A DNA stretch of 64,000 nucleotides from Podarcis bocagei (Eukaryota), in NCBI GenBank assembly GCA_964188305.1, contig OZ076885.1; one strand, written 5' to 3'. The notes under the pieces were generated by a model. The model worked only from the letters and a program-made list of their open reading frames with translations, had not been told where the DNA came from and ran no database searches. Below are positions 14,401-59,572 of the stretch, one piece after another. The position numbers and the translations under genes were made by a program. Every line of letters starts with the position of its first letter. Position 1 is the first letter of the stretch.

Positions 14401-17400
14401 GGCAATGGTATGGTAATTGCCATCACCTCAGACTTCATCCCAATGCAGGTGTACAAATACACATCTAGCCCCTGCATACAGAAGAATTACACAGGCAAAG
14501 AGTGAGTGTCATTTGAGTCCTTTTGGTAGTTTTCAAGTATAGCATATATTCAGTTAGTCAGTTTCTTCTTGTGTGTACACTTGTTATGCGTGACAAATGC
14601 TAAACAGCAAAGTTTGCTAAGGCTAGCAGGATAAGAGATACTGAATATGACCATGTCTTGAGAACAATTTTTTCTCTGTAGGGTTACTTCAGAGATTAAT
14701 TTATTGTTATGGAACACAAGCAGCTTCTGTTGCTAAAGGTCTTTCTGTACGAGACCATTCATAAAGTATGTGATGCACTGTTGTGGAGGGAGAAAAGGGT
14801 GGGAAAGTTAAGGCAAAGGAGGAATTTAGTTTTCGACAAAAAGAGATAAGCAGGGAGGAGGCAATTTTAAAAGTGTAACATATATTATGAATACTGTGTG
14901 TGAGAAAGAGAAAATCAATATATTTCATTCTGTTTCTTGAATCCTCCCTACAGAAAAATAGAAGACTATTCAATTATAGGCTTTGTAAATTAATCCTCCT
15001 TTCTCTGGCTCATTTTAAAATGGGATTTTACTCAGATTTCTGGATACAGTATTCATCGAGGAAGAAAGTTTCATTAATTAGTTTCATCTTGCTGCCTGTG
15101 ACTGTCTAATGTAAGATGGCATCAAGGTCACCGTGACTGTTCAAAAATTAACCTAATGGCTGCATGGCCAACCAGCACGTACACCCTCTAGTGCTGAGAA
15201 GTATGTTCCTTGGCTAAGCAGTATCTGCTGTTCTGTATACAGGGGTTTTTTTGTATAAAAATTGTTTTTTTAATTTTGGCACCCCATTTTGATGGAGTTC
15301 ATGGATTGCAACATCCACATGTGTCTGGATGCAGCTTGCTGGTCTAATGCGGTCCATGACTCCAATGGTTGGTATTAGGGTGAGGCAAGCTAGCTCTGTT
15401 GTTTTCTGTTCTGTGCTTGAATTCCCAAATGTGTACTTACACTGTTAGCCTTTTTCTTAATTGTCCTTTCTTATTGGAAATGAGTTCTTATGTGTGTGCT
15501 TATAACCTCCTTAATAAAGCTTTGTGTTTATCCTGGTGTACCTTACTGGAGTAAACTTGGCTCTAAATCTGGTACTTGGCTGCTTGGTACTATGCTACTG
15601 AGCAATTTGTGGGCTTGGGGCTCAAAAGTCAAAAAGTGGACTTTTTGCCTCTTGTTTTTGTGAATCCCAAGGATGTCCGTCCAGAAGCCCCCTGAGTTTC
15701 TCCTGGCTTGGGTTGGAGTATTAACAGGGGCTCTGGCAATACCACCTGGCAGAATAGTTTTTTACCCTGGTGATTCAACATCCTGTTGCAACTCAAGATG
15801 TTTGTACCCAGGAGTTGTAGGGGGATTAAGTATCCATCTTCCCTACCTTATCCCCCCTCCTTTCTTTACAGGCTGCATAAATGTTTAGACTGGGACCCTA
15901 CTGCACCCCATCTGATTGTCACTTTTTTTGTTGTTGCCCATAGTTGTTTGGCAGGTTACGTCAACTACAGTCTTTCGGTGTTCAACGTCCAGGACTTTGC
16001 GAACCATGAGAATCTGCCAGAACGTAAAGATCCCATGGGGAATGTGATAACGCACTGCAGGTACTGGCAAATGTATGGTGATGTTTCCATGCCCTCAGCT
16101 TTAGCAATGAAACTTCCACAGCCCAATTGTTATTGGTGCAGTCCTCCATCCCTTCAACAGAGCTTATATTATCTGTTGGAGCTTTTGTGTGTGTGTGCGA
16201 GGAGAAACTCAATCTAGCATTGGGCTACTCTGGAGATTATATTCTTTTCCCTTTGCAGTCACACAAATGTGTATGTATGAAGACCAGGGGAGGTGGGGGA
16301 TGGAAAATCTGTTATTTTTGTGGAAGTAACTAAAGCCTTATTTTTGAATCCTGAAAGTCAACACTTTATATTGGTTTATATTTGTGGAAGACAGTATTAG
16401 CCATAGATCACCTGAGGTGTGTTTGCAACAAATATTTTCCCAAGATACATAATTCTAAAAAGTGAGTGCTGTTTGAACCAAATGCTGTGTGGAGTCACAG
16501 TTTACTGATCCAATTCCAGATGTGGTTGCAGGAAAATGAATTCTACTTTAAGAGAGGAACATGGCTTGCCTGCAATATTCACTGCAGTGTCAGAGTAGAC
16601 ATGGCAGAAACACAGAACCTGCTAGCTGGGAAAAGCAACCTGCCAGTGCTCTACTTATGATCCTGTCCTTTATCATTACATTGACTGGGAGGGGCTCCAC
16701 TTCAAGTGACATGTTGGAGCCCTGCTTGCTGACAGACTTCATCATCATTCATATAAGTAGCAGCAAGACTTTCTTGAAGGAGGGACAGAAAGAAGGAGTG
16801 GCAAGCAGGGAAAGAAGCATTTGATTGCTTTTAACATCTCAAAGTCTTGCATGTATTGCCCAGTATTAGATGCCCTACTATCTGATAGATAGGACAGTAC
16901 TCTCTTAGTACTAGTTTATGACTGAACAGTACTGATTATTGTTCTCTCATCAGATTTAGCTTCTGAAAACTGTACAGTACTTTTTTTTTAACATCACTTT
17001 TCTGCTTCATAAAGCCCCCAAAGCAGCTTACAAAAGTTAAAAACAACAAATATCAGTAAATTCCCCATAAGGGCAAACATTGGGCAAACATCCAAAGAAA
17101 TAGCTGTTAGCAGTGCTTTTTTTCTTAAAAAAATATGTTTAGGGGTACTCTCATTTTGACTCAAGAAAATCACCATTTTATAGTTCAAATCAGGAAAAAT
17201 AAATACAGTAAATGGACAAAAGTACAAAGATTCACAAAATGTTTAGAGGTATGCATAACCCTGTGTATCCTCAGAAAAAAAGCACTGGCTGTTAGTCTGT
17301 TGCAGCAAAGAAAACCACAATCCTTTGTTGTCAAAAGAAGACACTAAAAACAACACGTTTCAAACAAATAACTGGATTTCTGTAATAGGCAATACATACT

Positions 17401-20040
17401 GCAGCATTTATGTGTTGCTTTTGCCCTTCCTGTAGGTACCGAGATTACAGGAACAATGAGGACTACAGCCATACTGTTGAGTTTTGGCATATTCTTGCAG
17501 CCCGCCTTTCCTTCCTTATCTTGTTTGAAGTAAGTATTTTTGTTGTAAAAGCTCTAGTATGTTAGTTTTCAGCTGAACATAAATGTGAGTGTGAAGGAAC
17601 ATTTACATTTAGGCTCCTTAAGAGTGTAACTTCATTGATCATAGCTTAGGGCAACATTTGTGGAATAATCTTGGGTCACATTCAGCCAAGTATGACCAGG
17701 GTATCCCCAACCATGCTTCTCATTCTCAAAGTAATGCACTCTGAAAAAGCTTTCATATATGAGAAGAAATAAATATACTCTATTCCTTTTAGAGATGATT
17801 CCCTTGCTAACAGCCAGATCACATTCTGTAGAATATTGGACTTGGCAAAGCAGCAGGCAGTAGGGAATGGAGAAACTTTTTATTTTGTAGAACTGTTAAA
17901 TTATTTTAAGTTTTGTGTTTCACTCTTTGTCCACAGAGCTCTGTATGTCCATGCAAATAAGGTTTCTATGTTGTTTGCCATCCAGGTACTGGACATTATA
18001 AGCCGTCTTAACTTTGGAGATGAAATATCTCTTTCAGTGTGTTCTGAGTCCAGGAACAGAAACTCTGCCAGTTAGCGAGGGGCAACTATACATGGACTTG
18101 ACTATCTTTCCCAGGACTAAACAAAGTCTGTGTTGAATGATAATTGGGGCATCGCTTTAGATTTCCTCTGGACACGACCTAATAGTGGGTTTATAATTGA
18201 CTGTTCAGTCCTTTCACAGTCAGTGGAGGGACTTAGATTAATGTCGATCCATGACGCTTAGTTGCCATGATGTAGTAAAACACACAAGTGTCCAAAAGAA
18301 CCAATGTAAAGCAGTTAAGAACAGCAGGTTGCTTACTGTTGGTCATTATCTAGACCAACAATTGTATTGTTGAGTTACTTTTACATGGCATAGGGACTAT
18401 TGTAATCAAGCAGTATATAAATTGCTTAAATGAACAAATTAGATGGTGATTGCAGTATGTCTCCTGTAAGGAATAAAATCTGATTCTGTTGGCTCTTTGC
18501 AGCATGTGGCCCTTTGCATCAAACTGATTGCAGCCTGGTTTGTGCCTGATGTCCCCAGGGTCATTAAGAACCTGCATCTACAACAAAAACGTGAAAGGCT
18601 GTTGAAAAGACTCAGGTGTGTGTTTTATCCGAGTACGATTCTCTTGAGAGGCAAACAATGGACAATAAAGCTACAGGGAGCAGGCTCTTGAACTGCGGTG
18701 TTGTTTGGGGAGGGAGATTGTTGTTATTTATATATTTTTGGTATATTTATTTTCAGATCTTATTGTGATTTATATGGAAATTGTTCAGTTTGGTTGTGTA
18801 CTTTTTGATGCATTTTATTTATTGTTTATAATTACTTTTTATGTTTGTAATGTAAATCATTTCATGCTGTAAGCCACCTTTAGCATGATTTTAACTATGG
18901 AAAGGCAGCATACAAATAAAATGATGATGCCTGGAATAGTCCCAAGTGGATAGCACTACAGCAGATGTTATGGCAGCAGAGATTAATTTTACTTGCTTTT
19001 TTTGTTGTACCGTTATCATTTAAATTTAGTTTAATTTAAGCCTGTATGTACTTCCAAGTTGAGCCCTATTGGGGTATTCATTTACAATGGGGATGGAGAA
19101 AAAACTCCACAGAACTCTGATTCCACCTTGGCCTAATCTGATCAGAGCAGATCATGACCTGGATTAGATCAATAAATTACTATAGAACCTACAGTCCTGC
19201 AGAACCCAGTGCTGAGCCAAGGGCTCCAGGGCTGGCTTCCTCTGTTCATTTCATATGGTTCCCTCTATCCCTTTTTAAAAGTTTCAGAAGTAGTCTTCCA
19301 GCCATTCAGAGTCTGGAATGGCCAGTACAGTGGGTCTTCTTCAACAGAATAGGGCAAGTCTCCCTGGGAACAATGTAGCTTTTTGATGTTCCATCACTCA
19401 CAGAGGGGATGTGACTGCTGTGTTTTTTGCATCATCATCATCATCTAATATGCCACCCACCTGATTGGGTTGCCCCTGCAAAAAATAGTAAAAACACAAT
19501 ACAACCTCAAATACTAAAAACTTCCCTTAACAGGGCTGCCTTCAGATGTCTTTTAAGTCACATAGCTGAGAGCAAGGGAATGTTATCAAATCCCATCACT
19601 CCCAGGGCTTCAGCTGACGTGATTCCTCTGCTTAAGACACAAACACACCCTGCTGTATATCATGCCTACATCAGTTTGTCTCCTGGAAGTGACCTGTGGG
19701 AATATTTTTGTTCAATGTGCAAATAAATCCTTGATGTATCATTTTGTAAGGTGGTTCCATACAGCAGGTGGCAGTGAATTCTGTTTTATCCCCACAGCTG
19801 AGATGGTTTCATGCTCTCTTACATGAAAGTAAATATTCTTGTATTCTCCTTTCTATTTTAAATGCTTAAATGGCATAGGAAGGACCCTCATTGGCTTCCC
19901 TTCCAGGTATTAGTTAAGCCCACACCTCTTTAGCTTTGCCATTTTCCCCCTTGCAATTAAAATGCTGCATCTTCCAACTGAAATTGAGAATAGTTGTTTC
20001 TATATATTTTAGAAGAATGGATGACTCCACAGAAGTATAG
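1008..20040 (+). CDS. ANO9: Anoctamin-9 (TMEM16J), 3' 16 coding exons; 5' exons lie upstream of the window
   Basis: GT-AG exons with consistent phases: 1008-1104, 1497-1557, 3104-3186, 4484-4588, 9123-9287, 9382-9418, 9604-9715, 10231-10288, 10940-11037, 12879-13042, 13600-13752, 14354-14501, 15944-16060, 17436-17529, 18503-18615, 20013-20040. Anoctamin motifs: [54 protein letters not shown]-terminus STEV resembles human ANO9 STDV, and the gene lies just upstream of SIGIRR as in mammals. Confidence 0.95.
1497..1557 (+). CDS. ANO9: ANO9 exon ([20 protein letters not shown])
   Basis: ttag| acceptor, |gtaagc donor; conserved DN.GTV.FAIFM..W. Confidence 0.92.
1694..2828. mobile_element. Non-autonomous hAT (Charlie-like) element with captured CpG-island cargo ('Pack-hAT' copy 1), in an ANO9 intron
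   Basis: TIRs cagtgtttttcaacc and ggttgggaaacactg; perfect 8-bp TSD ctctagaa at 1686-1693 and 2829-2836; no transposase; GC/CpG-rich interior in an AT-rich intron. Confidence 0.9.
2319..2432 (+). pseudogene. PRKAR2A: Transposon-captured 5' coding fragment of a PKA type II regulatory subunit (docking/dimerisation domain), most like PRKAR2A
   Basis: [38 protein letters not shown] versus recalled RII-alpha [34 protein letters not shown]. Similarity stops abruptly after 38 codons. The GYT, PPDL and EYFT motifs favour RII-alpha over RII-beta. Confidence 0.85.
3104..3186 (+). CDS. ANO9: ANO9 exon ([28 protein letters not shown])
   Basis: atag| acceptor, |gtaagg donor. Confidence 0.92.
4484..4588 (+). 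CDS. ANO9: ANO9 exon ([11 protein letters not shown]...[11 protein letters not shown])
   Basis: ctag| acceptor, |gtatgt donor; 105 nt, phase 0-0. Confidence 0.88.
4653..7790 (-). mobile_element. RTE-X-like LINE 3' remnant, interrupted by a younger L2
   Basis: (TTCA)n tail plus aataaa on the minus strand at 4653-4690; minus-strand [14 protein letters not shown]...RLC...EHLFFKCP zinc-knuckle-like region near 7340-7500. Confidence 0.55.
4791..6843 (-). mobile_element. Young 5'-truncated L2 LINE (RT domain)
   Basis: ORFs 5487-6920 and 4984-5481: [39 protein letters not shown]; (TTA)n tail; CpG-rich. Confidence 0.92.
8404..8454. repeat. (GGGA)n(GA)n microsatellite
   Basis: Seen directly. Confidence 0.9.
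9123..9287 (+). CDS. ANO9: ANO9 exon ([16 protein letters not shown]...YLTIIIMSK)
   Basis: atag| acceptor, |gtatgg donor; TM helices. Confidence 0.92.
9382..9418 (+). CDS. ANO9: ANO9 exon ([12 protein letters not shown])
   Basis: gtag| acceptor, |gtaaga donor. Confidence 0.88.
9604..9715 (+). CDS. ANO9: ANO9 exon ([10 protein letters not shown]...[10 protein letters not shown])
   Basis: ccag| acceptor, |gtaaac donor. Confidence 0.92.
10231..10288 (+). CDS. ANO9: ANO9 exon ([19 protein letters not shown])
   Basis: ttag| acceptor, |gtaagt donor. Confidence 0.92.
10940..11037 (+). CDS. ANO9: ANO9 exon ([33 protein letters not shown])
   Basis: ccag| acceptor, |gtaagt donor. Confidence 0.93.
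11677..12385 (-). mobile_element. 5'-truncated L1-type LINE with 17-bp TSD
   Basis: Minus [12 protein letters not shown]...CWKC...YHMSWSC (L1 CCHC tail); A-rich 3' end; TSD tgtttcataccacttta at 11660-11676 and 12386-12402. Confidence 0.8.
12879..13042 (+). CDS. ANO9: ANO9 exon (WIRYKYKLL...[12 protein letters not shown])
   Basis: gcag| acceptor, |gtaagt donor; LF.E.LEM motif. Confidence 0.92.
13443..13560. mobile_element. Penelope-like retroelement terminal fragment
   Basis: agataggtagccgtgttggtctgccatagtcaaaat...; second copy at 40973; family assigned from recall. Confidence 0.5.
13600..13752 (+). CDS. ANO9: ANO9 exon ([34 protein letters not shown]...ANDI)
   Basis: tcag| acceptor, |gtaagc donor; hallmark TMEM16 TM7-8 motif. 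Confidence 0.95.
14354..14501 (+). CDS. ANO9: ANO9 exon ([30 protein letters not shown]...)
   Basis: gcag| acceptor, |gtgagt donor. Confidence 0.93.
15944..16060 (+). CDS. ANO9: ANO9 exon ([13 protein letters not shown]...NVITHCR)
   Basis: atag| acceptor, |gtactg donor; GYVN.SLS motif. Confidence 0.9.
17436..17529 (+). CDS. ANO9: ANO9 exon ([31 protein letters not shown])
   Basis: gtag| acceptor, |gtaagt donor. Confidence 0.93.
18503..18615 (+). CDS. ANO9: ANO9 exon ([18 protein letters not shown]...LLKRLR)
   Basis: gcag| acceptor, |gtgtgt donor. Confidence 0.9.
20013..20040 (+). CDS. ANO9: ANO9 terminal coding exon (RMDDSTEV*)
   Basis: tttag| acceptor in the correct phase; ends STEV-TAG, like human STDV. 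Confidence 0.75.
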
Positions 20041-32135: not shown

Positions 32136-33222
32136 TGCTTGACATAGATCAGGTACCTCTTACTGTTACACACTAAAAACTTGCCTGCCATTCATATAGT
32201 CATTGTGGTTAAGGATTACTTGCTTATATGGGACAGCAGCTTTGATCAGGTAATGATTCTGAATACAACTTTGGGGAGCCTAGTGGTTATTCCATGTTTC
32301 ATGTTTAGGTTTCTGAAAGCTTCTCTGTAATTGGAGAGTTGTTCCTCTTTTATGCATTTTCTTTCACATCTGAACTGTATATTAGCTGCACTTCATGATC
32401 AGAATTATGAGTAGCCCTGAGTGTGTATTTTATGCTACATTTAAAAAGAAAACAGCAGCACATCTTTTACAGATTAAAAAAGAGAATTCAGCTCTACTAG
32501 TATTGTTTTTCAGTTCAGTAATAGAACTTACACACATGGTGTAGCTGTCAGGTTTGGTCTTGTCTTGAGATCTAACATTTTCCCTTTGCCTGAAAGCAGG
32601 CCTCCTTGGTGTATTTTCCTTGTTTACTCCTTAGGGGGGTTCTTGTTTACTCCTTGGGGCATTTTCATGTTTATAGTCCACAGCAGTCTTTGCCAGGATC
32701 CAGGATAACCGGCTGGCTTAGTGCCATAGAGCGGCTATCCTCACAGCTGCAGAGCTTTTGAGCAACCTGCCTCCTGGCTCTTTACTGAGCAAACTCTTGG
32801 TCGGCTGTTTTGCTGCCAACACGCTGGGTGGGTTTGTTGATTTTAAGAGTCCAGGTTTCATTTTCTCCTTGTATGCAGGTGGAAAGGTGGGTGGAGCAAT
32901 GATAGCAGGTGGGAGGAACTGGCTGTCCCGAGTGCAGGCCTGGAAGATTGTGATTGGGGGTGGAGAATAGAACAAGTCATTTAAGGAGGACATGGAATGA
33001 ACAAACAAAAAAAAGCAGAGGGAGATACTTAACTGGCAAAGCCAGTCTGTTGGCCAGTCATGTGATTAACATGGCTACGATCAGGGAGTGCACAGCAAGG
33101 ACACACAAGGAGTCTCAGGATTTGAAGGTGGCTGCCTGAATCTCAAAGAGGGAAGTCCATAAAGGTAATTATTTCCCCTGTGCTTTTCCATTTTGTAGGA
33201 TGCTGCTTGTGAATTAGCTAAA

Positions 33223-33322
33223 ATGACTGTGAAATTGCTCTCTCTTCTGCCTGTGCCATCTGTGCTCTTGGCTTTCTGCCTTGCCACAAGGAGTGAGCAG
33301 GAAAGGACAGCAGCTTTACAAG
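33223..33322 (+). CDS. SIGIRR: SIGIRR putative first coding (signal peptide) exon, [33 protein letters not shown]
   Basis: Pyrimidine-tract acceptor at 33197-33198, ATG with A at -3, hydrophobic leader, AAG|gtgaga donor in phase 1 matching the 43948 acceptor. Confidence 0.65.
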
Positions 33323-42300: not shown

Positions 42301-45300
42301 GTTCAGTCAAAGGCAACTTTGGGGTGCGGCGCTCATCTTGCTTCAGGCCTAGGGAACCGGCGTTTGTCCACAGACAGCTTTCCGGGTCATGAGGCCAGCA
42401 TGACTAAACCGCTTCTGGCACAATAGGACACCGTGACGAGTGCCATAGCACAGGGAACCGCCATTTACCTTCCTGCCACAGCAGTACCTAATTGTCTACT
42501 TGCACTGGTATACTTCCGAACTGCTAGGTTGTCAGGAGCTGGAACAGAGCAATGGGAGCTCACCCCATCGCGTGGACTCAAACCGCTGACCTTCCGATTG
42601 GCAAGCCCAAGGGGCTCAGTGGTTTAGATCACAGCGCCACCTGTTCCCTATAGTTGCATATTTATGCCTACTGTTACACCAGCAGTGGTAGTCAAGAACC
42701 ATTGGGTGCCTCCAGAATAGTCCATCAACAGGCAACCAGAGCCCTTGAAGTTGGGTTTGAATAGCATACAAACAACACATAAAAAGGTCTCAAATACATA
42801 AGTTACTCTTAACTGAGAACTGCATGAGAAAATTATGTTCCATGTGCTACATCACTTGGCAAGTAGAGCGCAATGTGGAATAAATTCCCATTTAAATTTA
42901 TCTGCTAACATGAGGGAGACTATTTTAGAACTGGTACATAGATGGTACTTAGGTCATTTAACTATCATATGTGATGGCCATGTGTGCAAAATGAATTTTA
43001 CTTGGAAGTCACCCCACACCAAAATAGTATTGATCAGTCAGACATGATTTATGCTTTGTACTTCTGGACATTTCTGAAAATGATTATTATTCTTACAAAG
43101 ACTTATCAACTTTTGTTTATAGCAGCTAAACTGGATATGTCTGAGCACTGGAAAAGATACAGAACCTCTATCTATTTCTCAATGGTATCAAATAAGGTGG
43201 AGGTTCACTGTCATGGACAAACAAGTGCATCCATTTCATGTACTTCATTGTTCCAGTTCCAGTTCATATCAAATACTAACAAGTATACAGACATGCAACT
43301 TTTTGCTCAGCAAAATGTACTGTGTTGTACAGGTTTTTTTGAAGGTTGATTGCTTTTCCTTTGAACTTGTAGCTCTGAAGCACTTATTATAATTATAGTA
43401 TCTTTTTAAAAAAAGTTTCCAGGTGTGCAAATGACCAGTGAATACCACCAATGCTTTTTTTATACATTAGCAGTATTTGGTTGGCTAGGTTTCCCCCCTG
43501 TTCTTTCCTTTTTCTATAGTGCTTGCTTCAGTGCATTGCCTCTCCTAGCATTTTTGTGTGTGGTGTGTGTGTTATGAGGAGGGTTGTTGAATGTGATCAT
43601 TGTGTTAATGCCCTTATTATCAATTTGTTCTCTGTTCATTATAAATAAGGAATCTATGGCATAGATAGAGTTCTAGTTAGAATCACATAGTTAGCTGATC
43701 TTGTTATCAGGATGATAAATATTTATCTCTCTTCTCTATAGTAAATTCACTTTAAACAGTCTTTCAGGAGCCATCACATGGTATGCATATTAAAAGTAAG
43801 TTCAGCCGGGGGGCAGTGTCTATGACCTGGTTGGGCATGAATGACTTGGTTGCTGTTGGAGTTGTGTATTCTGTGCTTGCTGTAGAAATGTAGGTTGGAT
43901 TAGGCATCACAGAAGTAGTTGCAATTTAACTGCTTTGCTTTATTTAGAATTCTTTTCGCTGACGGTTTCATCTAATTTATCGTGTGTGGACCCAGATCAC
44001 TTCTATGATCACACCATTTGGACCCAGCAAGAACAGGTTAATCATTTGTTCTGCCCTTTGGATAACCAGAGCCTCCAGCTTCTTCAGTCTACCTCAAACT
44101 TTAGCATCCAGTGGAGCAAAAACTGTCATCTGCTTAACTTCACCGCGTTAAGCCACCTGCACAGCACACTGCAGAACACAACAACATACCTCACCTTTGA
44201 GCACGCAAATGCCAGCGATGCAGGCAACTATACCTGCACGCTCTACTTGAACGATCAGAGAAACAGCTCCTTCACTGTCCGGCTGGTCATGGCAGGTGAG
44301 TGAAAGAAGTGGGAATTTGCAAACATGCCTTTGGATCCCTAACCTAACACTGACGTCTCCTCTTGGGCCCATCCCAGGAGAAGCAGTACTGCTACTGTTT
44401 CAAGATGGGCCACTTGTCTGCCTAAGTCTGGATCCTATGTTGCTCATTAGACACATAGTAGCTGTGAAGTATCTAACTATGTAGGGCATGATTTTGTCCG
44501 TTTTCACCTAAACATAAGGTACTGATCATACTCAAATAAGTTACGGCATTAGATAAGCCCTGGGGATGTGAGCCAATTTATCAAATACTATGATCCAAAT
44601 TATGCATTGTCAACCAGAAGTTGGCGGGTTGATGTCTGTGACTGTATGTGTGGCTGTTGCTGAAGAGGGCTTTCTTTTACCTGGGAGAAAAAGGCAGACA
44701 CGGAGCTCTTTCTGAGTCCTCTCTGCATTTTATGTTATATCTAAGATGACATATAAAGGTAAAGGGACCCCTGACTGTTTGGTCCAGTCACAGATGACTC
44801 TGAGGTTTCGGCGCTCATCTCGCTTTACTGGCCGATAGAACTGTGTAAACAGATAAACCTGACGAAGGCTTCACTGTGGTGGAGACGCAGGTTAGGAGAG
44901 AGAGAAAAGACTTAATGTTTCTAAAGCTGTGATAACAAGTGATAGTACCTAAAATGTGGTGAGAGGTACCTGAAGCTACCAAGATAAGCTCACTCCGTCC
45001 CCCATTTGCTAGTTGCATTGTCAGAGTTGAAATGGGGAAAGGCAGGTTTAAAAAAATATATACGCTAAGATTTAAAAAATTAGCAGACTTGTTGGGACAG
45101 ATAAGTGTGTTTTGGTCTCTGCTTAATCTTTTATAGTGCACTTAAACTAGGATGGATCACCATTTTGGAGTACTTCATTATGCTATTAGAAACATAAATT
45201 AGCTAAAGATGGTCAGAGGGAGATCATACATCATTTGAGCTGAAACACACATCCTGAGACCTGGAAGTCAGGCTTGCTAGGCACTGTAGGTCTTATTTCC

Positions 45301-47898
45301 GAGAAGATTTGTATAGGATTGTACTCTTCAATTTTTTTTATTCTTTAAGATAAGGATGGTAGTTGCTAGTTTCTCAGGAAGTTCTCCTGAATTGGCTAAG
45401 GACTGGATATGGGCTCTAAAAAGAATATTTTTTGTATTGTTCTCCCTTTTAAATAAAGGTAAAGTTTGGAAATGAGTCCAATACACACAGAGGTACCTAC
45501 AGAAGGGAGAGCCTTTACATTTTAAAAAATGATGGCCATGATGGCCCAGTTCTCCTTTTCAGAATTTAAGGGAATGCAAGGGAAAGGAAAATTAGGGACA
45601 AGTACCTGTGACATATTCTAGTTTTTAATGCAATGTGACATTTGCACCTTAAACACCCTATTTTCCGCAATAGGATTCAGAAAGTTCTTCATTAAAAAAA
45701 CGCATGCTCACATATGCTGAAAATATTTAGCATGGATGAATGAGTTGACAGTATGAAAGACAGAGGGGGAAGAACAGCACTGTGCTGGACTCTGAACAGG
45801 CAGTGAGAATAACTAAAGTACTGGCACTAGGACTTCAAAAGTTAATAATTAATACCATATCTCATATTCAGCACTTCTGTGATGTGCATACCCCTTTATC
45901 CTGGGCATTTCTCTATTATGGGACATGACATGCTTTCCAGATAACCTGAACATTCTGTCTTTCCCACTATAGTCCTTACTGAATTTCTCATTGTTTTCTC
46001 AAGTCAAATCAGAACTGCAGAACCAGCCTTGAGAGAGAGGTTATACTCAGCAATTTGTCTAGTTAAGTCGGCGAACCCACTGTGCAAGGGAGATTGTGCT
46101 TAGGTGCAGGGTCACAGGGACAAGAGTAGCTTGACTTTCTTTGTTATGTTAGCCAGACCTAAATAGCCAATATAAGATTTGCAGAATGCAGTCTGGAAGT
46201 TCAGTGCTCTCATTGGAAAGCTCTCTTACGGTGTACTGTTTCTGTTTTCCCAACAGATATTTGCAGTGTCCTTCCTCGTTTCCTTTACCCCTCCAGCAAT
46301 CTGACTTTGCAACGTGATTTGGGAAGCCAGTTTACACTGAACTGCACTGTGCAGCTGCCCTACACGAAAAGCTGTGATTTTGGCCTCCATTGGATGAAAG
46401 ATGACCAGTTGCTAGACAACGAGACCTATGCTGCTTCTACTCATTGGTAAGAAGGCTTTTATGTATAATGGAAAATAAAGCTAAATTGGCAGTATAAACT
46501 AGAAACAAAAGAGAGAGAAACAAATTAAAATAGTGTCTCCCAGACTCTGAAGATAATGGTGGATCTTTAAGGGCTTATGTATACTATTAGCCTTATAGGT
46601 CTGTGGAATAGGGGCGGTAGTGTAATATATATACTTCAATGGGAGGAAATATCTTTGCTGTAATAGGGTGAGATTGAGTGAGAGTGAGAGTGGGAGATTG
46701 TGTTTCTGTTAAAAAGAAAATTGTACACTTAAGCCCTGGAGAAGAGCTTAAGAGAATGCTCTATGTATCAGTCTTCAATGGGGAGGCAGAGGGAGAGGGA
46801 GAGGAAGAAGACCCTTTCAGATGTTTGGGGCTTCAGAACAAATCTGGTTTCATGAACACCCCCTTTATTTTAGTGTTCCCACTGCAGGGGACTTGTGTTG
46901 TGTTGTACGTTATCAGTGGGGTCATAGATATGTTCTACTAGGTTACTGTGAACTCATATAATATTTTGTACATCACTCAATAATGGCATGGAGGCTGTAG
47001 CTGGGAGAAGAAAAATTGACATTTCACTAGTAAGAAAAAATGCACTTTAAGCAATAGGACATTGCTACTATAGTTCCACAAAAGAAGTACTTTTATGTAA
47101 GACAATGGGATCCCATACAACAACTAAGCGACCACAATTAATCCATTGCTTTAAAAGAACAAGGAAAAAGATGATTTTGAAAGTCCCCAAATTTCTACTA
47201 GTTTTTGTGGAAGAAAAGGTTTTCAAAGGCCAACATGATAAAATAGTGACAGTATTTCCAGATCATAGATACTCAAATGGACACTCTTGTTACCAACTCA
47301 CAGTTCATTCCTTGTCCAAATTTAATGTTTGGTATAATCCAAGATTCATAGGGTGGAGCCCTCTGAGTTTCCTTCCTGTCCGGTTCTGACTGAAATTTCC
47401 TAGTGTTTGTTTTCCATCAGTGCTAACCTAAATCTTCTTCTATTTGCACCCCAGGTTCAATGACAATAAATCAGAGATATTCATCTCCAGCACTTTGGAT
47501 ATGAATGTAACAACAGATGAAATTTATGGAGCATTTGCCTGCTTGGTTAGAAACAGTACAGCAGTTTTCACACTGCAAAAATCAGGTAGCATTTCTTTGT
47601 ACTTCATACCATGTGCATTTGGGTGTGGGCCGGTACTCCATTTGAAGGTTGTTATCTTTATTAAGTTGTTCAAAAAAGATTCTGCTACTCACTAACTGTA
47701 TTCCATAGTAGAATTCCCATGAGTATTTCTGAAATGAGAGTTGGAGATACTTTTTTTTAAAGAGTTGTCAGACTACTCTGAAAACACACATGGCATTCAA
47801 TCCAAATGTAAATTTCCCTTTCAGAGTTGACCTCTGAAAACCGATAGATAAGAAGATGGCTGTGTACAGCATTGATTGGCTGATGCCTTTGAAGTGTG

Positions 47899-48394: not shown

Positions 48395-51300
48395 AACTAC
48401 ATCCTTGGGTCCAATGTACAGGATTCAGTATGGTCTATTGAGGATGTGGGTAGCATGGAATCTGGTCAGAGTTTGACCCACAGTGAGTTTATAGAGGTGT
48501 GACAGCTTCACTATACATTCAGTTTATAATTCAGTCCACATTTTTCACTTTGTAGTGCCACTGTTCAGATGACTCTTGGCATGTATGCAAAGGCAAATGT
48601 GTTTTTTGGGGGAAGAAACATAGTTTTGAACTAAGATGGCTTCAAAATTCTGAAGTATTGTATGACCCTCTGATAATTTATGAAGTGGGTATCTCAGCTT
48701 GGCTTTCCTTCTTTTAGGAAGAAGCAAGACTTAATTTTCTATATAGAAACTAACTGTTCTCATTTAAAAAATATAGTAATTTACTTTAGCCCATGCATGG
48801 CCATCTGATAGACTGAAGTCTAGCTGGGGTGATAAGAGTATTTGCTTTTATGCTGTATCTAGATGCCTTCCTTTTCTTTTGAATAAGTTTCCCCTGTTTT
48901 ATCTTGGAATTCAAGAAACTCAGCTGAGCCTGCCTAATCCTCTTCTTAGACTTTAAAAGATGTTTTTGCTCTAGCTGGTAGTAGGGTTTCTAAAAAGGGC
49001 TTTGAACCAGACTTACCATGTCTCTAGAGGAGTTTAATATAAAGACAGCCTTTAGTGTCATCAGTATTGCTCCATGCTGGCTTTAGGGGCTCAGTTTACA
49101 AGAGCAATTTTATGATGGCGTCATCAGTGAATCTGATGGCAGAAAATTGCCACATGATGGCACCAGCAGACAATAGAAACTTTTCTGAGGTTTTCAATCA
49201 GTCACAGCCTCAAATGGTTCTACACACCAAAACAAACGTGCTATCAGGCTGCCCCCAAGCAACTCAGCTGTTTTGGCATGCTTGAACACTTTCAAATTCC
49301 TCCATCTGGAAGTTTCCATAGGCTGATGGAGCAATTCTGAGATTAGAGCCTCAGTGTATTTTAAAGCAACATTCAGCAAATGGCTCAGTTAACAGTATAT
49401 TCCAGAGTGTTTTACAAAAAGTCTAAATGAACGTGCCCGCGCGCTTGCAGGAAGAAATTGAATTGGCACTGGAGAATGTGAATAATTTAGTTCATGCACA
49501 TCTTTACTCTGAAAAACTTTGATTTACTTCTGCATGTGCATCTTGTGAAAGGAGATACTTGCAAAATTTGGAGGATGATCTAACAATGTGGTGCTAGAAT
49601 AAATCTGTCTTTTAGCTTCTGCTCATCTCTTCCTCATCATGGTTGCACATTCTGATAGTCAGAACAGTCATCAAGATACTAAAAATTGTTCAAGAATGAC
49701 ATAACCCCTCATTTTCTTTATAATTTGGTATATTCTGAGACCATAGACCCCAACTCTTCTCTTCCTTTTTTCTCTACCATCCTATCAATTGTAAGGCTGT
49801 TTTCTCATTTAATGCTATTTAAAATATGTCTTTCTATTACAGCAGAGACTGCTGGGCACTTGGGCGCTGTGCTAGCTGCACTTGTCACGGTGGCACTGCT
49901 GTTACTAATGGCTGTGATGTATGTGAAGTGCCGTCTGAATGTGCTCCTCTGGTACAGAAACCGTCATGGAGAGGTGGAGATCAATGGTAAATATTGGGCT
50001 GGAGAGTTGGCTGTCACTTTTCCCCTTGTGAGATTCGAGTTTCAATGACAGTCCAACCCAAATGTGAACTTCTACAAGAATTATCCTCTCAGTGTTATAG
50101 CTAGTCAGCACAGGTTTTGTTTTTTGTTGTTTTTTAAAAAATTATAATAAATTTCTCCTCTTGGTACTTTTCCACAGATGGAAAGCTGTATGATGCCTAT
50201 GTGTCTTATTCTAACTCAACGGATGATAGAAAGTTTGTCAACTTCATAGTGAAGCCACAGCTGGAGAATCGTCATGGCTACAAGATTTTCCTGGATGATA
50301 AAGACATCCTGCCCAATTCAGGTATAGAACCTTGTCCAACACCTCATTTAATATGTACCTGGGCAGTCAGACTTGCTGTTGAGTTCAGGCTGCAAATAAC
50401 TTATCTGAAATGGATGTTGGCTAAATGAAGAGAAACCTTCAGTTTAATTTGACCATTTGGCATCCTATGTTTAATATGGTAGCTTTATTAAGTGTTAAAA
50501 TATCCAATTGATAATGGTACACACACTAAGTCTGAATATCAGGTTAACTCTTGCATCCATTTTCAAACAAGAGGAGGAGAATGCAAAAAACACTATTTCT
50601 ATTAGACACTGAGACAGCAGGATGAAAGTTGGTATGCAACTTTCTCTGAAAGTTGCCCTGAACATTCTGCATTTCAAGTACAGCTTAATCCGTGTCCCTG
50701 TTTCCAAGGTAGATTGGAAAGATGTAAAACATAGTGCAGTGCTATATCTGACTGAGATATTAGAATACAGGCTGGTGTATACATTCAGGACACCATTGTG
50801 CATTTCATATATGATCCCAGCTTGACATCTGTATCCTTTTTCAGAGTGAAGGAAAGGGCCACAAACATTGCAATGCAGTACAGTGGTACCTCGGGTTACA
50901 TACGCTTCAGGTTACATACGCTTCAGGTTACAGACTCCGCTAACCCAGAAATAGTACCTTGGGTTAAAAACTTTGCTTCAGGATGAGAACAGAAATCGCG
51001 CAGCAGCAGCAGGAGGCCCCATTAGCTAAAGTGGTGCTTCAGGTTAAGAACAGTTTCGGGTTAAGAACAGACCTCCGGAACGAATTAAGTACTTAACCCG
51101 AGGTACCACTGTATCTGAAATGTAGCCTGTTGAACGCTGCACTTTGCTACTTAATAGATGCAAAAGTATGGCTCTGAAAAATTACTTTGGCACACTATTT
51201 TGTGCCTCTAAAGCAACCTAAAATACCTTTAATTCTAAACACCAATAATGGCAAAACTGCAAAGTAGGAACTGACAGGCTCTCTGTTGTACGAAGAAAAA

Positions 51301-54300
51301 TGTATTCTCCTTAACCACCCAGTTGTCCACAGTTAGGTTCCATTTGCATATTAAGTAGGATGTATTCACAGTCTGCCCAGTATATGCTCAGCACAACTGG
51401 TGGGCTTTCTACACCTGTTCAAAGTCTGTGGCATGATGCATTGCTTAACTTGCATGACCTTGCAGATATGCATTTCATAGAGATGGGTGGTTGTTTTGTG
51501 CTGGCCTGCTGCCTCTCCCTGTGCCTCCACATTTCCAGGCTGTTATTGCATATGTTTGACAATGTGTTTCTTTATTTTGGGCACAGCTTGTTTAATCTTC
51601 CTCCAAAGAGCATGAAGTGTAGTTCCTATCCAGGCAGTTTACAGGCCCACCCCTGTTCTGGCTTCCGCAATATCACTGTAATCATGTGCCTTCAGACCAT
51701 TTGTTCTTATCTGCATCTGTTTTGTTTAATAAAACTTCTATAAAAAGTATGCAGCATCCATTTGCATGGGGATGCAAAACAAGCTGTGTACAAAATGCAG
51801 CTCCTCCATATTCTATAATGCTGCCCACAGTGGACAGTTCTGGTTAAACAAGAATACATCACAAAACAGCATTTCTCAGCAGCTGTATTACCTTTTTGAG
51901 TGTATAGTACTATGGAAACGGCATCTGTATTGTGCTCTTTGTGGTGTGTCTAATAATTAAAAAATGCAATGTTTGAGTATACTCTTCATTTTTATTTTTA
52001 TTTTATGTCCTGAGTGTTCCACCAGAGGCACTCATATCCAAAACCAATAGTGCTGTCTGAAGGACAGGGAAGTTCTAAACAGGCTGGTTAGTTTTTATTC
52101 CATTGCCCAGGGGTTCTCCTTTCTGTAGAGCAGAGTGGATATGCATTTGGATGCTAGGGTATTTCTTTCTTGTACAGGTGAAGGATGAATGCTGAAACAA
52201 CAATGGATTGGTTCTGGCCCTTCTCAGAAGAGATTTAGTTTTTCTCCTCTCTTTCAGAACCTTCTGCAGATCTGATTATGAATGTCAGCCGGTGCCGCCG
52301 CCTCATTGTGGTTCTCTCTAATGCATATCTGGAACAGGAATGGTGCAACAATAATTTCAGGTAATTAGAGAGTCAGCAATAGAAACAAGTTCTCTGATCC
52401 TCCTTTCATTTTTGGAGGATCAGGAATGACTCGGGCAAATAGTGTGTGCAATTCTGATTTGGAGGGATCACTAAAATCATAGTTTGCTTATTTGGTTGTC
52501 CTGGTGAACTATGGCTTGTCAAAATAGTCAAGTGTTCCAATAAGTTATACTCATAAGAGGAGGAGGGAAGGTAGAAGGGAGTAGGAAGGCAGGTGGGAGT
52601 ATCTTCCTGGCTCTCCTATCTATGGTTAGAAGAGCATCTGAATTTATCCAATTTCTGTATACACCTCCAATCACAACACCCAGAATCTCTCTCATATATC
52701 TGGAAATGAAGCACAGCAGTTTAGTGTTAATACCTCTCAAACCAGTTCCTGAAGTTTTCATTGAACTGTTTGAATTCTACTGAAACTAGTCATGCTTAGA
52801 ATTAATTTTTTGGGTGACTAGATTGGGTTTCAATAGTTTGGTTGTGGATTTGCTTAGGACTCTAACCAATTGTCTGGTTTTGCAGGGAAGGTCTTTGGAG
52901 GCTGCTGGAACTATCCCGGAGGCCAATCTTCATTGTCTTTGAGAGCCAGTACCGAGAAATAGCACATCCAGCCATAAATTTGCTGAAGCAGCAGAAGAAC
53001 ACAGTGACCCTTCTGATGTGGCGTGCTGGGTCCATGGTAAGTTGTGGGCTGCAAGGCCATAACTTCATCACTGTGGTTTTGTTTCTCAGTGGCAAGGCAG
53101 TACTTGAAGCTATTCAAGAAGCATAGAAGTGTAGAGTAGCTTCTCTTCCAAGAAGGGTTGAGAGCCAATTCTCCATTACTTGACCTTGCTGTGATGTATA
53201 CCAGAGTAATAACTGTTACCTGCTTTTCTTGGCACTAAAGAGTAGCATCTTCATGAAAGTAGGTTGAATATATTTTTGTCTGTCCGTTATTTTGATCATG
53301 ATCTCCAGTTATTTACTTTTTATTTTAGCTATTTACCTGTTGACTAGGAAATCATCAGCTCCAGAGATTTGCCAAATGATACCTTTTTAGATGAACATGG
53401 CTTGACTGCTCCATGGCTCATGCGTGGAGGTCATGAGCAGGGTTGTAAGCATTGCAGAAAATATAGATAAGTTATATTTTAACTCCCACTTTAAAGAAGC
53501 AAACAGAGCCACAGGGAGGCACCAGAACCTGAGAAATAAGAATTGGAAACATATACTTGCTTCACCCAGGGTACTCTCAGTGCAAAGAGAAGTGAAAAGA
53601 GAGGGGGAAGTTAGAGGCTGGAGAAGGAAAAAAGCACAAACCCTTCCCTAAAATGAGCATTTGCAGGGGAGCATTCTAGCAGGATAGAGACTTCTGGTTT
53701 ACATTTATTGCTGTTTCTTTATCTGTGCTAAATGAACAATAGCATGCTTGTGACTCACAATACTCCTTGCAGTTACACATCAGGATATTTAGTTATTTTA
53801 TTATGCTTTTCACCCACCCTTCACCTCACGGTCCCAGGGCAGGTTACAACAATTAGAAAAACTACTGACATGACACATGTGTGTGTATTTTTAAAGAACT
53901 GGACCCATCGTGTTTTGTAAGCTGGTATAATGCAAAACTTGTAGCTCATATAAATATTTAAATACATAAGTAGGATGCACACACAGGTAAACAAATAACT
54001 GCAAGCATGCTTGCAATAGACCTTAGGTTTCCAGAACTTAGGGAGTGCAAGGAATGGAGGGGAGGGGACAACAGCACACAGTGCAAAGACATCCCATCAA
54101 GCACCTCCCACTCTTGGGGGGCAGGAAGCACTTCAATAGAGTTCATTTGAAGGTGGTCCTGTGGACAGATGTGCACAAAAATCCACATGGAAAAATCAGA
54201 GCTGTGCAACTCACTTGTGCAATTAACACTCTGCTGTGCACACAACCTATGCCCCAAGACATAAGAAAGGGGCTTTTTGATTTTACTTACAATGTAAAGA

Positions 54301-57300: not shown

Positions 57301-59572
57301 ATCCCTCTGTTGTAGCGAACATTTATCTCTCTCTGTTCAATCCTTTGGGAGCCAGACAGGGTGCCTGTGCTTCATAGACGAGGCGCGCCTGTGAGAACGC
57401 TGCCCTCAAGGCAGGGCTGCTGGGACTTGCCTACAGATATATCGCACAAGGGTTTGTGAGTAACTGATGAGTATGTGACAATATACTGCCTCTTTACTGC
57501 TTCTAGGCGCCTTCATCTGATTTTTGGAAGGAACTGTGCCTCGCCCTGCCACGAAAAGTGTCCTATCAAGGCCTCAGGGGAGACCCCCAGACCAGTTTCC
57601 AGGAAGACAAGGACCCTATGCTGATCCTCAACAGCAATTACTTGGATTTCCGGGGGGATTCGCACCCTGAAGGAGACTCTGGTAACAGCACTGTTTAATC
57701 TTCACTCTGTCACCATAGCATGCCAACAGGAGAACACACAGTTGCTCTTGATCCTGCTCTGTGGTTTTTTGTTTTTTTGAGTGTTAGTCCACAGTTAGCC
57801 AGAAAGATTCTCAAGTGAGGCTCACAATTAAGTTTGAAAGAAAAAAAACCCATTAAAAAATCACTTGATAGAAGAACACTGCACTTGCTAAAATTAGCAA
57901 AAGTATAGCCCAGCAGCTTTATTAATCAGTCAGCCAGGTGCCTTTCTACACACTGCCATGAGCTAACTGTGTGCTTCCTGCCTGTATTATTACAGCTATT
58001 TTAGTATCGTATGCCAAAACCCTATGTACACTTACTTTAACGTAAGTTCCATTGAACTCAATCCTTTAGAGTGGATATGTGTAGGATCAGGCCTCACTTT
58101 TGATTACAAAAGCTAAGGCTAGTCAGATGGTAACCGCCCCCCCTCCCCGAATTAAAGATGCTTTGGAATATGTGATCAAATTGTGCTATGTATTCTCATC
58201 TTAGTTTCACCTCTAGGAAATAGGTTTCTTCTTTATTTCAGAATTATCAAAACCTGTTCAGCCAGAGGTGACAGTGGAGACCAATGGAAGTGAAGCCTCT
58301 GCACCCACTTTCAGATTCCTTAAAATTTATTTTCTCCACTTTAAGCCTGTGTAGTGTAGTCAGATCACAAGCAGTAGTATTTATTTAAGGCCTTTATATA
58401 CCATCTGACTTGGCATAATGTGTCTACTTTGGTTGATCACCAGGCTTGGTCACCATTGTGTGCTGTGTCTGTGGCTTCCAANNNNNNNNNNNNNNNNNNN
58501 NNNNNNNNNNNNNNNNNNNNNNNNNNNNNNNNNNNNNNNNNNNNNNNNNNNNNNNNNNNNNNNNNNNNNNNNNNNNNNNNNNNNNNNNNNNNNNNNNNNN
58601 NNNNNNNNNNNNNNNNTACACCTAATTAGCTGATCCTTCATCAGTCAAACAACCATTGCCTCAATCCAAATGAAATGATCTTCCCTGTCATGCAGCAGTC
58701 CACACATACATACTGTGGCACATACATACTGTTTTTCCCATTCACTGCTAACATTGGATAGGGAGCAGGGCAACATGTTTTCATAGAGAACATGTTATTT
58801 TGGCTATGAATCCATTTGTGTGTTTGTAGCGGAAGAAAGGAAATAATGGTGTCGTTATCACTACATGCTTCCTTAGAGTAGCAATACCAAGGAGTGGAAA
58901 TTTACGTAATTTACCACCTCCATCTATCATTTACGTGCAAACATACCCAAGAGTTCATAAAAGAAATGGGTTTTATATCCACCAAAGGGCAGTTTTCCAT
59001 TCTCGGAGCCTGAGACTACAGAGAGCTTGGTGGTTTAGTCCTGACGTCCTTTTTCCTAGGCCTGTGGGACTATGGCTGTACAATGGATCAATGAGTAGGA
59101 AGCGCACCTGAGGCATCGGTTCCAGAGGTTGTGAAGAACAAGCTCTGGCCCTAGGGATTTGTTAACACAGGCTGAGCACTTGCAAAGCAATACATTTTAA
59201 TTTTAGTAACAGGAGCAAAATAAGTTCAGTGGTCATAAAAGATTTACGAGCGACTGGCAAGAGCAAGCCCAGCTCGCTTGTACACGGTGATTTTATTGTC
59301 AAGAGAAGAACAGAGAAAATAATGGGTTTGGCTGGGCTTTTCTTTTAGTTGAGACAGCAGCGTTGGGCTTATTTTGCTGAGGGTGTTGCGTTCACTGTCA
59401 TTAATAGGCCTTGTTTCTTGTGTGGCGCGGCTGTGCACCTTGTTGGAAGCTTTCCTCATTAGTCTAGTTGCTCCATACAACAGCATGCCAGGATGCTTGA
59501 GGCTCCTCATTCTCTCACTTGCAAAGGGAATTGTTGCTTGGAAGACATTTCATTCTCACTAGGAGCGCCTGA

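Follow-up and report, generated by a model that had tools for sequence, protein, structure and literature searches.

The 64,000-nucleotide window of Podarcis bocagei DNA analysed here (GenBank assembly GCA_964188305.1, contig OZ076885.1) carries the lizard orthologue of SIGIRR (IL-1R8/TIR8), and our subject is its second exon, which encodes an immunoglobulin (Ig) domain, Ig-1, ahead of the canonical SIGIRR Ig domain, Ig-2. Much studied as a brake on signalling by IL-1R and TLR, SIGIRR is also a natural killer cell checkpoint, and its origin is debated. Exon boundaries were set from orthologous proteins and splice sites, read by eye, and yield a gene of ten coding exons in which every splice site is AG/GT (Table 1). 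The product has 559 amino acids and comprises, in order, a signal-peptide-like N-terminus, Ig-1, Ig-2, a transmembrane helix, a TIR domain and a long tail; it is identical at 556 of 559 positions to XP_077788282.1, 'single Ig IL-1-related receptor [Podarcis muralis]'. Pfam finds both Ig and TIR in this protein (TIR at 62.6 bits), with the strongest Ig matches within Ig-1. The single Ig domain from which SIGIRR takes its name is not what the lizard gene encodes, as Ig-1 occupies exon 2 and Ig-2 occupies exons 3 and 4.

Exon 2 (348 nucleotides, 43948-44295, plus strand) is flanked by ttatttAG on its 5′ side and GTgagt on its 3′ side and is in phase 1 at both ends. Read in frame 1 from base 43948 it contains stops, which reflect this phase and not a broken exon. 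The frame opened at 43950 runs for 115 codons without a stop, or 116 once both split codons are included, and encodes the motifs SCVD, LFCPLD, IQWSKNC and DAGNYTC as well as eight N-x-S/T sequons. It joins in phase to the signal exon upstream, whose last base is 33322, and to the Ig exon from 46257 onward, and its 3′ end holds a conserved methionine (..RLVMA), Met148, the sole methionine of the exon. An earlier note on this DNA had described an open 116-codon exon with canonical splice sites and eight sequons, in phase with the SIGIRR Ig exon at 46257. Our reading of the frame and motifs, the gene model and the splice joints all agree with that description; two earlier coordinates, 33224 for the ATG and 46447 for the end of the next Ig exon, were off and are corrected to 33223 and 46446. 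Since several open reading frames (ORFs) of at least 115 codons occur in the 64-kb window, an open stretch of this length is not rare by chance, and the case for the exon therefore rests on homology and expression. Indeed, the exon alone scores above the Pfam cut-offs for Ig_2 (29.7 bits; cut-off 27) and I-set (24.1 bits; cut-off 23.7), and homology searches with Ig-1 retrieve orthologues with E-values down to 1e-49.

The acceptor of this exon has moved. Within 43946-43970, the cAG of another squamate (L003:1990-2020) is cGG in this lizard, and a new AG, 21 nucleotides upstream of it, is used, which adds EFFSLTV to the mature N-terminus. Both acceptor forms are present among the RefSeq isoforms of Lacerta and Zootoca.

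RNA runs containing exon 2 were mapped over 43300-47800. In two contigs, X1 (2488 nucleotides, organism A) and X8 (2498 nucleotides, organism C), the segments 43946-44292, 46254-46445 and 47454-47585 are joined with GT..AG at the introns. Upstream, X8 continues into the end of the signal exon (...GAGTGAGCAGGAAAGGACAGCAGCTTTACA), which confirms the junction 33322>43948, and both contigs run on behind 47585 into exon 5. Furthermore, three stranded raw reads (X23) cross 44295>46257, with a depth of about 2.5 over exon 2 and about 2.6 over exon 3. Of the two junctions by which the exon had been proposed to be checked, 33322>43948 is thus found in X8, and 44295>46257 in contigs of two runs and in stranded raw reads; the exon is spliced into SIGIRR mRNA, joined to exons 3 and 4 in both X1 and X8.

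Table 1. Exons of the SIGIRR gene in the window, with the alternative donor in the first exon
Feature	Position	Strand	Basis
Exon 1, coding part: ATG and signal-peptide-like N-terminus	33223..33322	+	Phase-1 donor 33322/GT; X8 contig joins ...GGACAGCAGCTTTACA(AG) to 43948
First exon, upstream part, to alternative donor 33164/GT	33030..33164 (5′ limit approximate)	+	135-nucleotide upstream end of the X1 contig, ...GGGAAGTCCATAA(AG), joined to 43948
Exon 2: Ig-1, D2-type, four conserved Cys, eight sequons, Met148 at end	43948..44295	+	Sequence, Pfam, RNA, profile, structure model
Exon 3: first half of Ig-2 (canonical SIGIRR, D3-like)	46257..46446	+	Joint 44295>46257, GT..AG
Exon 4: second half of Ig-2	47455..47585	+	Joint 46446>47455
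Exon 5: transmembrane helix and juxtamembrane segment	49843..49986	+	X1/X8 continuation CAGAGACTGCTGGGCAC behind 47585 equals 49843 onward
Exon 6: TIR start	50178..50321	+	Gene model
Exon 7: TIR, including NVSRCRRLI (Cys at IL-1R1 Ser447-equivalent)	52258..52360	+	Gene model
Exon 8: TIR	52886..53036	+	Gene model
Exon 9: TIR end and tail start	57507..57681	+	Gene model
Exon 10: C-terminal tail and stop codon	60636..60829	+	Gene model

A run of 135 N at 58482-58616 lies in the intron between exons 9 and 10 and touches no coding exon.

Ig-1 has the features of the second Ig domain (D2) of the IL-1R family. Across an alignment of 17 species it has 19 invariant columns, including D, H, L-C-L, W-K-C, L-F and D-G-Y-T-C, with the first cysteine near-invariant; the four cysteines C5, C28, C52 and C89 are all invariant or nearly so. 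Judging from the sequence pattern, the N-terminal cysteine probably pairs with the cysteine after WxK, and that of LxC(P) with that of YxC. The Ig-1 profile matches D2 of IL-1R2 (140-205), ST2 (125-177), IL-1RAcP (116-199), IL-1R1 (123-180) and IL1RAPL1 (146-195), and hhalign places Ig-1 on the middle Ig domain of a three-Ig/transmembrane/TIR protein at 95% probability with all four cysteines aligned. An AlphaFold2 model of the mature ectodomain (mean pLDDT 83.8) consists of two beta-sandwich domains, for which Foldseek ranks IL1RAPL1, IL-18Ralpha and IL-1R1 at the top. VIA-align superposes model residues ~20-235 on IL-1R1 100-314, IL1RAPL1 129-352, IL-18Rbeta 158-356 and IL-1RAcP 134-345 with Z of about 12, and this register corresponds to D2-D3 in IL-1R1 and five other family members. 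Together, the four-cysteine alignment, the profile matches and the predicted structure support the D2-type assignment made earlier from the motifs, and on model and profile the lizard SIGIRR ectodomain is of the D2-D3 type of the IL-1R family. Like the three-Ig IL-1R ectodomains, lizard Ig-1 has the four-cysteine D2 pattern C...LxCP...WxKxC...GNYTC; unlike them, the lizard protein has no D1, and sequence identity in the structural alignments is 17-22%. The inter-domain geometry of the model is not comparable with theirs (root-mean-square deviation 9-13 Å).

When a solved SIGIRR ectodomain was sought in the PDB for the mammalian N-terminus, TIR domains only were found; the closely related turtle TIR matches the TIR of a PDB 'SIGIRR protein' at 2e-59. 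The prokaryote-oriented NCBIfam gave nothing useful. A HMMER search of 1.84 billion representatives, in which full-length reptile proteins are masked by 50% cluster representatives, returned mostly multi-Ig muscle and adhesion proteins, together with five single-stretch matches that are orthologues.

The resemblance of Ig-1 to D2 of several IL-1R family members could also be expected if the exon had been gained in this lineage by exon shuffling from another gene of the family. We give this explanation almost no credence, as shark, sturgeon, salamander and crocodilians carry Ig-1 in the same place at 47-62% identity, whereas its identity to D2 of other family members is only ~20-26%. Indeed, Ig-1 is widespread among annotated proteins. 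RefSeq proteins that bear the name 'single Ig IL-1-related receptor' contain it in the squamates Anolis, Sceloporus, Python, Elgaria, Varanus, Lacerta, Zootoca, Podarcis, Hemicordylus, Eublepharis, Rhineura and Sphaerodactylus, in all four sampled crocodilians (561 amino acids), and in the salamander Lissotriton, the shark Carcharodon, sturgeon and paddlefish. The sturgeon cluster matched by Ig-1 (E = 6e-28, 53% identity) includes 'DIGIRR [Acipenser sinensis]', a member of the two-Ig molecules of fish. The suspicion that automated reptile annotation might already hold the exon without comment is therefore correct: it is in RefSeq for P. muralis and many other reptiles, under the name 'single Ig'. 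A search for two-Ig bird or turtle proteins with a crocodilian Ig-1 query, made among annotated proteins of 310-980 amino acids sharing words with the query, returned only crocodilians and squamates, and says nothing on absence from birds.

The domain is conserved at least as well as Ig-2. Identity to Podarcis is higher in Ig-1 than in Ig-2 for 14 of 15 species, for example 54% vs 40% in the salamander and 53% vs 42% in sturgeon. In a genomic contig from another squamate (L003), the only stretches that align to the window are exon 2 (82% of nucleotides), exon 3 (75%) and a short intron patch, and the Nei-Gojobori dN/dS against this squamate is 0.32 for Ig-1 and equally 0.32 for the first Ig-2 exon. 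Between close relatives, the differences in exon 2 are three synonymous and none non-synonymous, and three of the four differences in Ig-2 are non-synonymous. These comparisons indicate, at the level of sequence, that purifying selection acts on Ig-1 no less strongly than on Ig-2.

Two further elements lie in intron 2. The aligned intron patch (45719-45819) has 75% identity over 100 nucleotides to L003:3741-3837 in an otherwise unalignable intron, and may be a conserved non-coding element. A second element of ~80 nucleotides at 44754-44835 (AAAGGTAAAGGGACCCCTGAC...GGCGCTCATCTCGCTTTACTGGCCGA) has enormous depth in all four of four runs, with loose ends on both sides, and is a fragment of a very abundant dispersed repeat. 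It resembles the squamate 'Sauria' SINE; an Rfam search with the element gave no match.

Turtles occupy an intermediate state. Two 3-kb Logan turtle transcript contigs (L001 and L002, identical over their 5′ 560 nucleotides) contain the signal exon, Ig-1, Ig-2, transmembrane helix, TIR and tail. Turtle SIGIRR is like that of the lizard in its exon structure, with the same junctions, including that between exons 2 and 3, and in having the signal and Ig-1 exons in the mRNA. Unlike in the lizard, the Ig-1 frame is broken: directly after SHLH there are 20 nucleotides where the lizard has 24, and the annotated protein begins further downstream, with an ORF of 417/418 amino acids starting at MEDLC, the methionine at the end of the Ig-1 exon. 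This ORF clusters at ≥90% with RefSeq SIGIRR of at least 10 turtle species, all of 417-418 amino acids, and the shifted frame recurs in the partial models of Gopherus and Chelydra, so that the frameshift is common to both families; in Chelydra the Cys and Gly of DAGNYTC are also lost. Within turtles the C-terminal half of Ig-1 is less conserved than Ig-2, and the same holds for Gavialis compared with Alligator, the numbers being small; the lizard-turtle dN/dS of Ig-1 is 0.20-0.32 and not raised. A relaxed constraint on turtle Ig-1 is only suggested by these values.

Ahead of the annotated start, the turtle mRNAs contain an upstream ORF of 128 codons (L001:266-700, L002:249-683), made of the signal peptide and half of Ig-1 and ending at the frameshifted stop. 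It could act as a uORF or be the source of a short secreted fragment.

As turtles demonstrate, loss of the frame need not remove the exon from the mRNA, and the lizard exon might likewise be an untranslated relic, or else an artefact of annotation or read-through. This is extremely improbable, given that none of the squamate, crocodilian, salamander, sturgeon and shark sequences examined has a broken frame, that the frame is continuous with the signal peptide, that the four cysteines and the DxGxYxC motif are invariant, and that the exon is 82% identical to that of the other squamate where the introns are unalignable. The dN/dS comparison that had been suggested as a check points the same way, with 0.32 for Ig-1 and an intact frame in other lizards disfavouring a non-coding relic.

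The locus also informs the relationship between SIGIRR and fish DIGIRR (double Ig IL-1R related molecule), reportedly described by Gu et al. in 2011. Upstream of the lizard gene and on the same strand lie anoctamin exons (9651-17529, plus strand), C-terminal and ANO9-like, which are 55-82% identical to the anoctamin part of a fused sturgeon ANO-DIGIRR model. This neighbour is presumably ANO9 specifically, as at the human locus. Of the earlier description of an ANO9-linked SIGIRR locus, the linkage holds, with an anoctamin gene head-to-tail upstream and the same neighbour as sturgeon DIGIRR, while the ANO9 identity is presumed. The sturgeon GenBank model (P0118) itself, in which the 3′ exons of the anoctamin gene are fused to DIGIRR, is a read-through artefact of annotation, yet informative for synteny. 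A maximum-likelihood tree from Ig-2 to the C-terminus follows the species tree, with the single-Ig turtles as sister to the two-Ig crocodilians (support 96/93), inside the sauropsids.

Two TIR positions have been used to describe these receptors. At the residue equivalent to IL-1R1 Ser447, all tetrapods have Cys, as do shark and paddlefish, but Huso and pipefish have Ser, and the site is therefore not diagnostic for DIGIRR versus SIGIRR. The window protein has Leu at the Tyr536-equivalent, like every tetrapod orthologue. Our placing of both sites on the lizard sequence, made from published positions and the human sequence, presumably holds. In human SIGIRR the corresponding residues are Cys222 and Leu305 (PMC3482685), and in DIGIRR the TIR domain keeps the Ser447-equivalent Ser and has the Arg-Tyr site mutated (PMC9448908).

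The lizard protein resembles fish DIGIRR (sturgeon UAB59905.1; golden pompano, PMC9448908) in having two Ig domains behind a signal-like N-terminus, in the 53% identity of its Ig-1 to the sturgeon cluster, in its anoctamin neighbour and in the Leu at the Tyr536-equivalent. It differs in that its host is an amniote and in its TIR Cys, a position at which Huso sturgeon and pipefish carry Ser. For fish DIGIRR, Golgi/cytoplasmic localisation and inhibition of IL-1- and lipopolysaccharide-induced NF-κB are reported. With mammalian SIGIRR, a protein of a single Ig domain that lacks a signal peptide (PMC3482685, PMC9448908), the lizard protein shares the RefSeq name, the anoctamin neighbour, Ig-2, the transmembrane helix, a TIR with Cys222/Leu305-type residues and the long tail; its main ORF adds the signal-like hydrophobic N-terminus and the D2-type Ig domain.

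In older literature DIGIRR is kept apart from SIGIRR as a second molecule, and a single-Ig form is known from zebrafish and carp (PMC9448908). One could accordingly suppose that the lizard gene is the orthologue of a separate DIGIRR paralogue and that single-Ig SIGIRR is another gene, lost by squamates. We consider this very unlikely: no fish has both DIGIRR and the single-Ig form (PMC9448908), the two share one chromosomal location (PMC9020223), the anoctamin neighbour is common to the lizard gene and sturgeon DIGIRR, the gene tree follows that of the species and places the single-Ig turtles within the two-Ig sauropsids, and the relic Ig-1 exon of turtles is still part of the same mRNA. The names DIGIRR and SIGIRR denote one orthologous gene adjoining an anoctamin gene.

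A second product of the lizard gene is suggested by its first exon (33030-33322), which has two donors 158 nucleotides apart, 33164 and 33322, represented by one contig each (X1 and X8, respectively). Donor 33164 lies 5′ of the ATG, and its use drops both the ATG and the signal peptide. In the resulting X1 mRNA an in-frame stop lies nine codons ahead of the junction with no ATG between, and the first in-frame methionine is Met148. From its sequence, this mRNA could encode a signal-less single-Ig ORF of 412 amino acids (MADICSV...) starting at Met148. A 412-amino-acid MADICSV... model is annotated for P. lilfordi (P0167) and a comparable single-Ig isoform of 421 amino acids for Alligator. Exon 2 also contains out-of-frame ATGs upstream of Met148 (e.g. 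that of an ORF starting MITPF...). The human SIGIRR N-terminus (M-x3-C-x3-P-x-FLSPS) presumably lines up with the lizard protein from Met148 onward.

Sauropsid SIGIRR may be a gene with two outputs, in which donor 33322 gives the signal-bearing two-Ig protein of DIGIRR type and donor 33164 the signal-less single-Ig protein of mammalian type from Met148; turtles, and by extension mammals, would then owe their single-Ig state to fixation of the second output, with Ig-1 decayed to a 5′ leader. We regard this as a tentative idea, doubtful as it stands. Less likely still, the two-Ig ORF would be real but minor, and the main lizard protein would be the 412-amino-acid single-Ig form without signal peptide, most of Ig-1 serving as 5′ leader. 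The use of donor 33164 by X1, with its in-frame stop and lack of an upstream ATG, the annotated single-Ig models of P. lilfordi and Alligator, and the start of turtle proteins at exactly the methionine at the end of the Ig-1 exon are consistent with it. However, the purifying selection on Ig-1, at least as strong as on Ig-2, is unexpected for a mere leader, the X8 contig includes the signal exon, and scanning to Met148 would be impeded by the out-of-frame ATGs of exon 2.

We therefore favour the reading in which the Ig-1 exon is a genuine, expressed coding exon of the lizard SIGIRR orthologue, which has the two-Ig DIGIRR architecture, this architecture being ancestral and the single-Ig form a derived loss; we put its probability at roughly 0.85. 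The two-Ig form is the ancestral state of jawed vertebrates, kept in sharks, sturgeons, teleosts, salamanders, squamates and crocodilians, and the single-Ig form of turtles and mammals looks like a later loss. That the single-Ig state is derived had been proposed in the earlier note, and the presence of two Ig domains from shark to crocodilians, together with the frameshifted relic exon of turtles, supports it. On this reading, the lizard protein would be a glycosylated type I membrane protein that dampens IL-1R/TLR signalling through its TIR domain and tail, like SIGIRR and DIGIRR; such negative regulation is probable by analogy with these homologues. Ig-1 would supply an extra, constrained extracellular contact surface, comparable to the D2-D3 surface of accessory chains such as IL-1RAcP. 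In turtles and mammals, the single-Ig state may have arisen by secondary loss re-using the methionine at the end of the Ig-1 exon, for mammals to judge from the human N-terminus.

Several points weigh against this reading. One of the two contigs, X1, uses donor 33164, which removes the start codon of the two-Ig ORF; RNA depth is low, at ~2-3 reads; and the RNA mapping was confined to a stretch of ≤6 kb, with skipping from exon 1 to exon 3 outside its reach. Support for the two-Ig product is at the level of DNA and RNA, with the signal peptide judged by eye, and the genomic comparison is with another squamate. In IL-36R the Ig-1 profile matches D1 and not D2, and tandem Ig pairs of titin score Z of ~11.6, tied with the ~12 of the IL-1R family, so that the D2-D3 call is based on the register and the cysteine pattern and not on Z. 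Finally, function is extrapolated from fish and mammalian homologues.

Reviews treat DIGIRR as a fish-only 'transitional' form (PMC9448908, PMC9020223), a phylogenetic study found no evidence for descent of SIGIRR from the IL-1R lineage (PMC5861070), and according to a 2025 survey that covered more than 400 species, most SIGIRR-like proteins have a single Ig domain or none (PMC12108812). In the literature we searched, coverage of which is incomplete, we found no report of DIGIRR outside fish and no description of a two-Ig SIGIRR architecture in reptiles. The origin of SIGIRR by stepwise loss of Ig domains is an idea already published, and the Ig-1 exon is already in automated reptile annotation (RefSeq, under the 'single Ig' name); the finding extends a known fish architecture to amniotes and is not a new type of molecule.

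Its value lies in evolutionary and annotation insight. The transition to one Ig domain is moved inside the amniotes, with turtles mid-way, which gives it a datable and testable place, and the domain concerned, a typical D2 of the IL-1R family, is under tighter constraint than the canonical SIGIRR Ig. A two-Ig ancestry supports the descent of SIGIRR from a multi-Ig, IL-1R-like ancestor, and if the gene does have two outputs, the start codon of mammals would be what is left of the Ig-1 exon. For most non-mammalian vertebrates, 'single Ig' gene names mislead.

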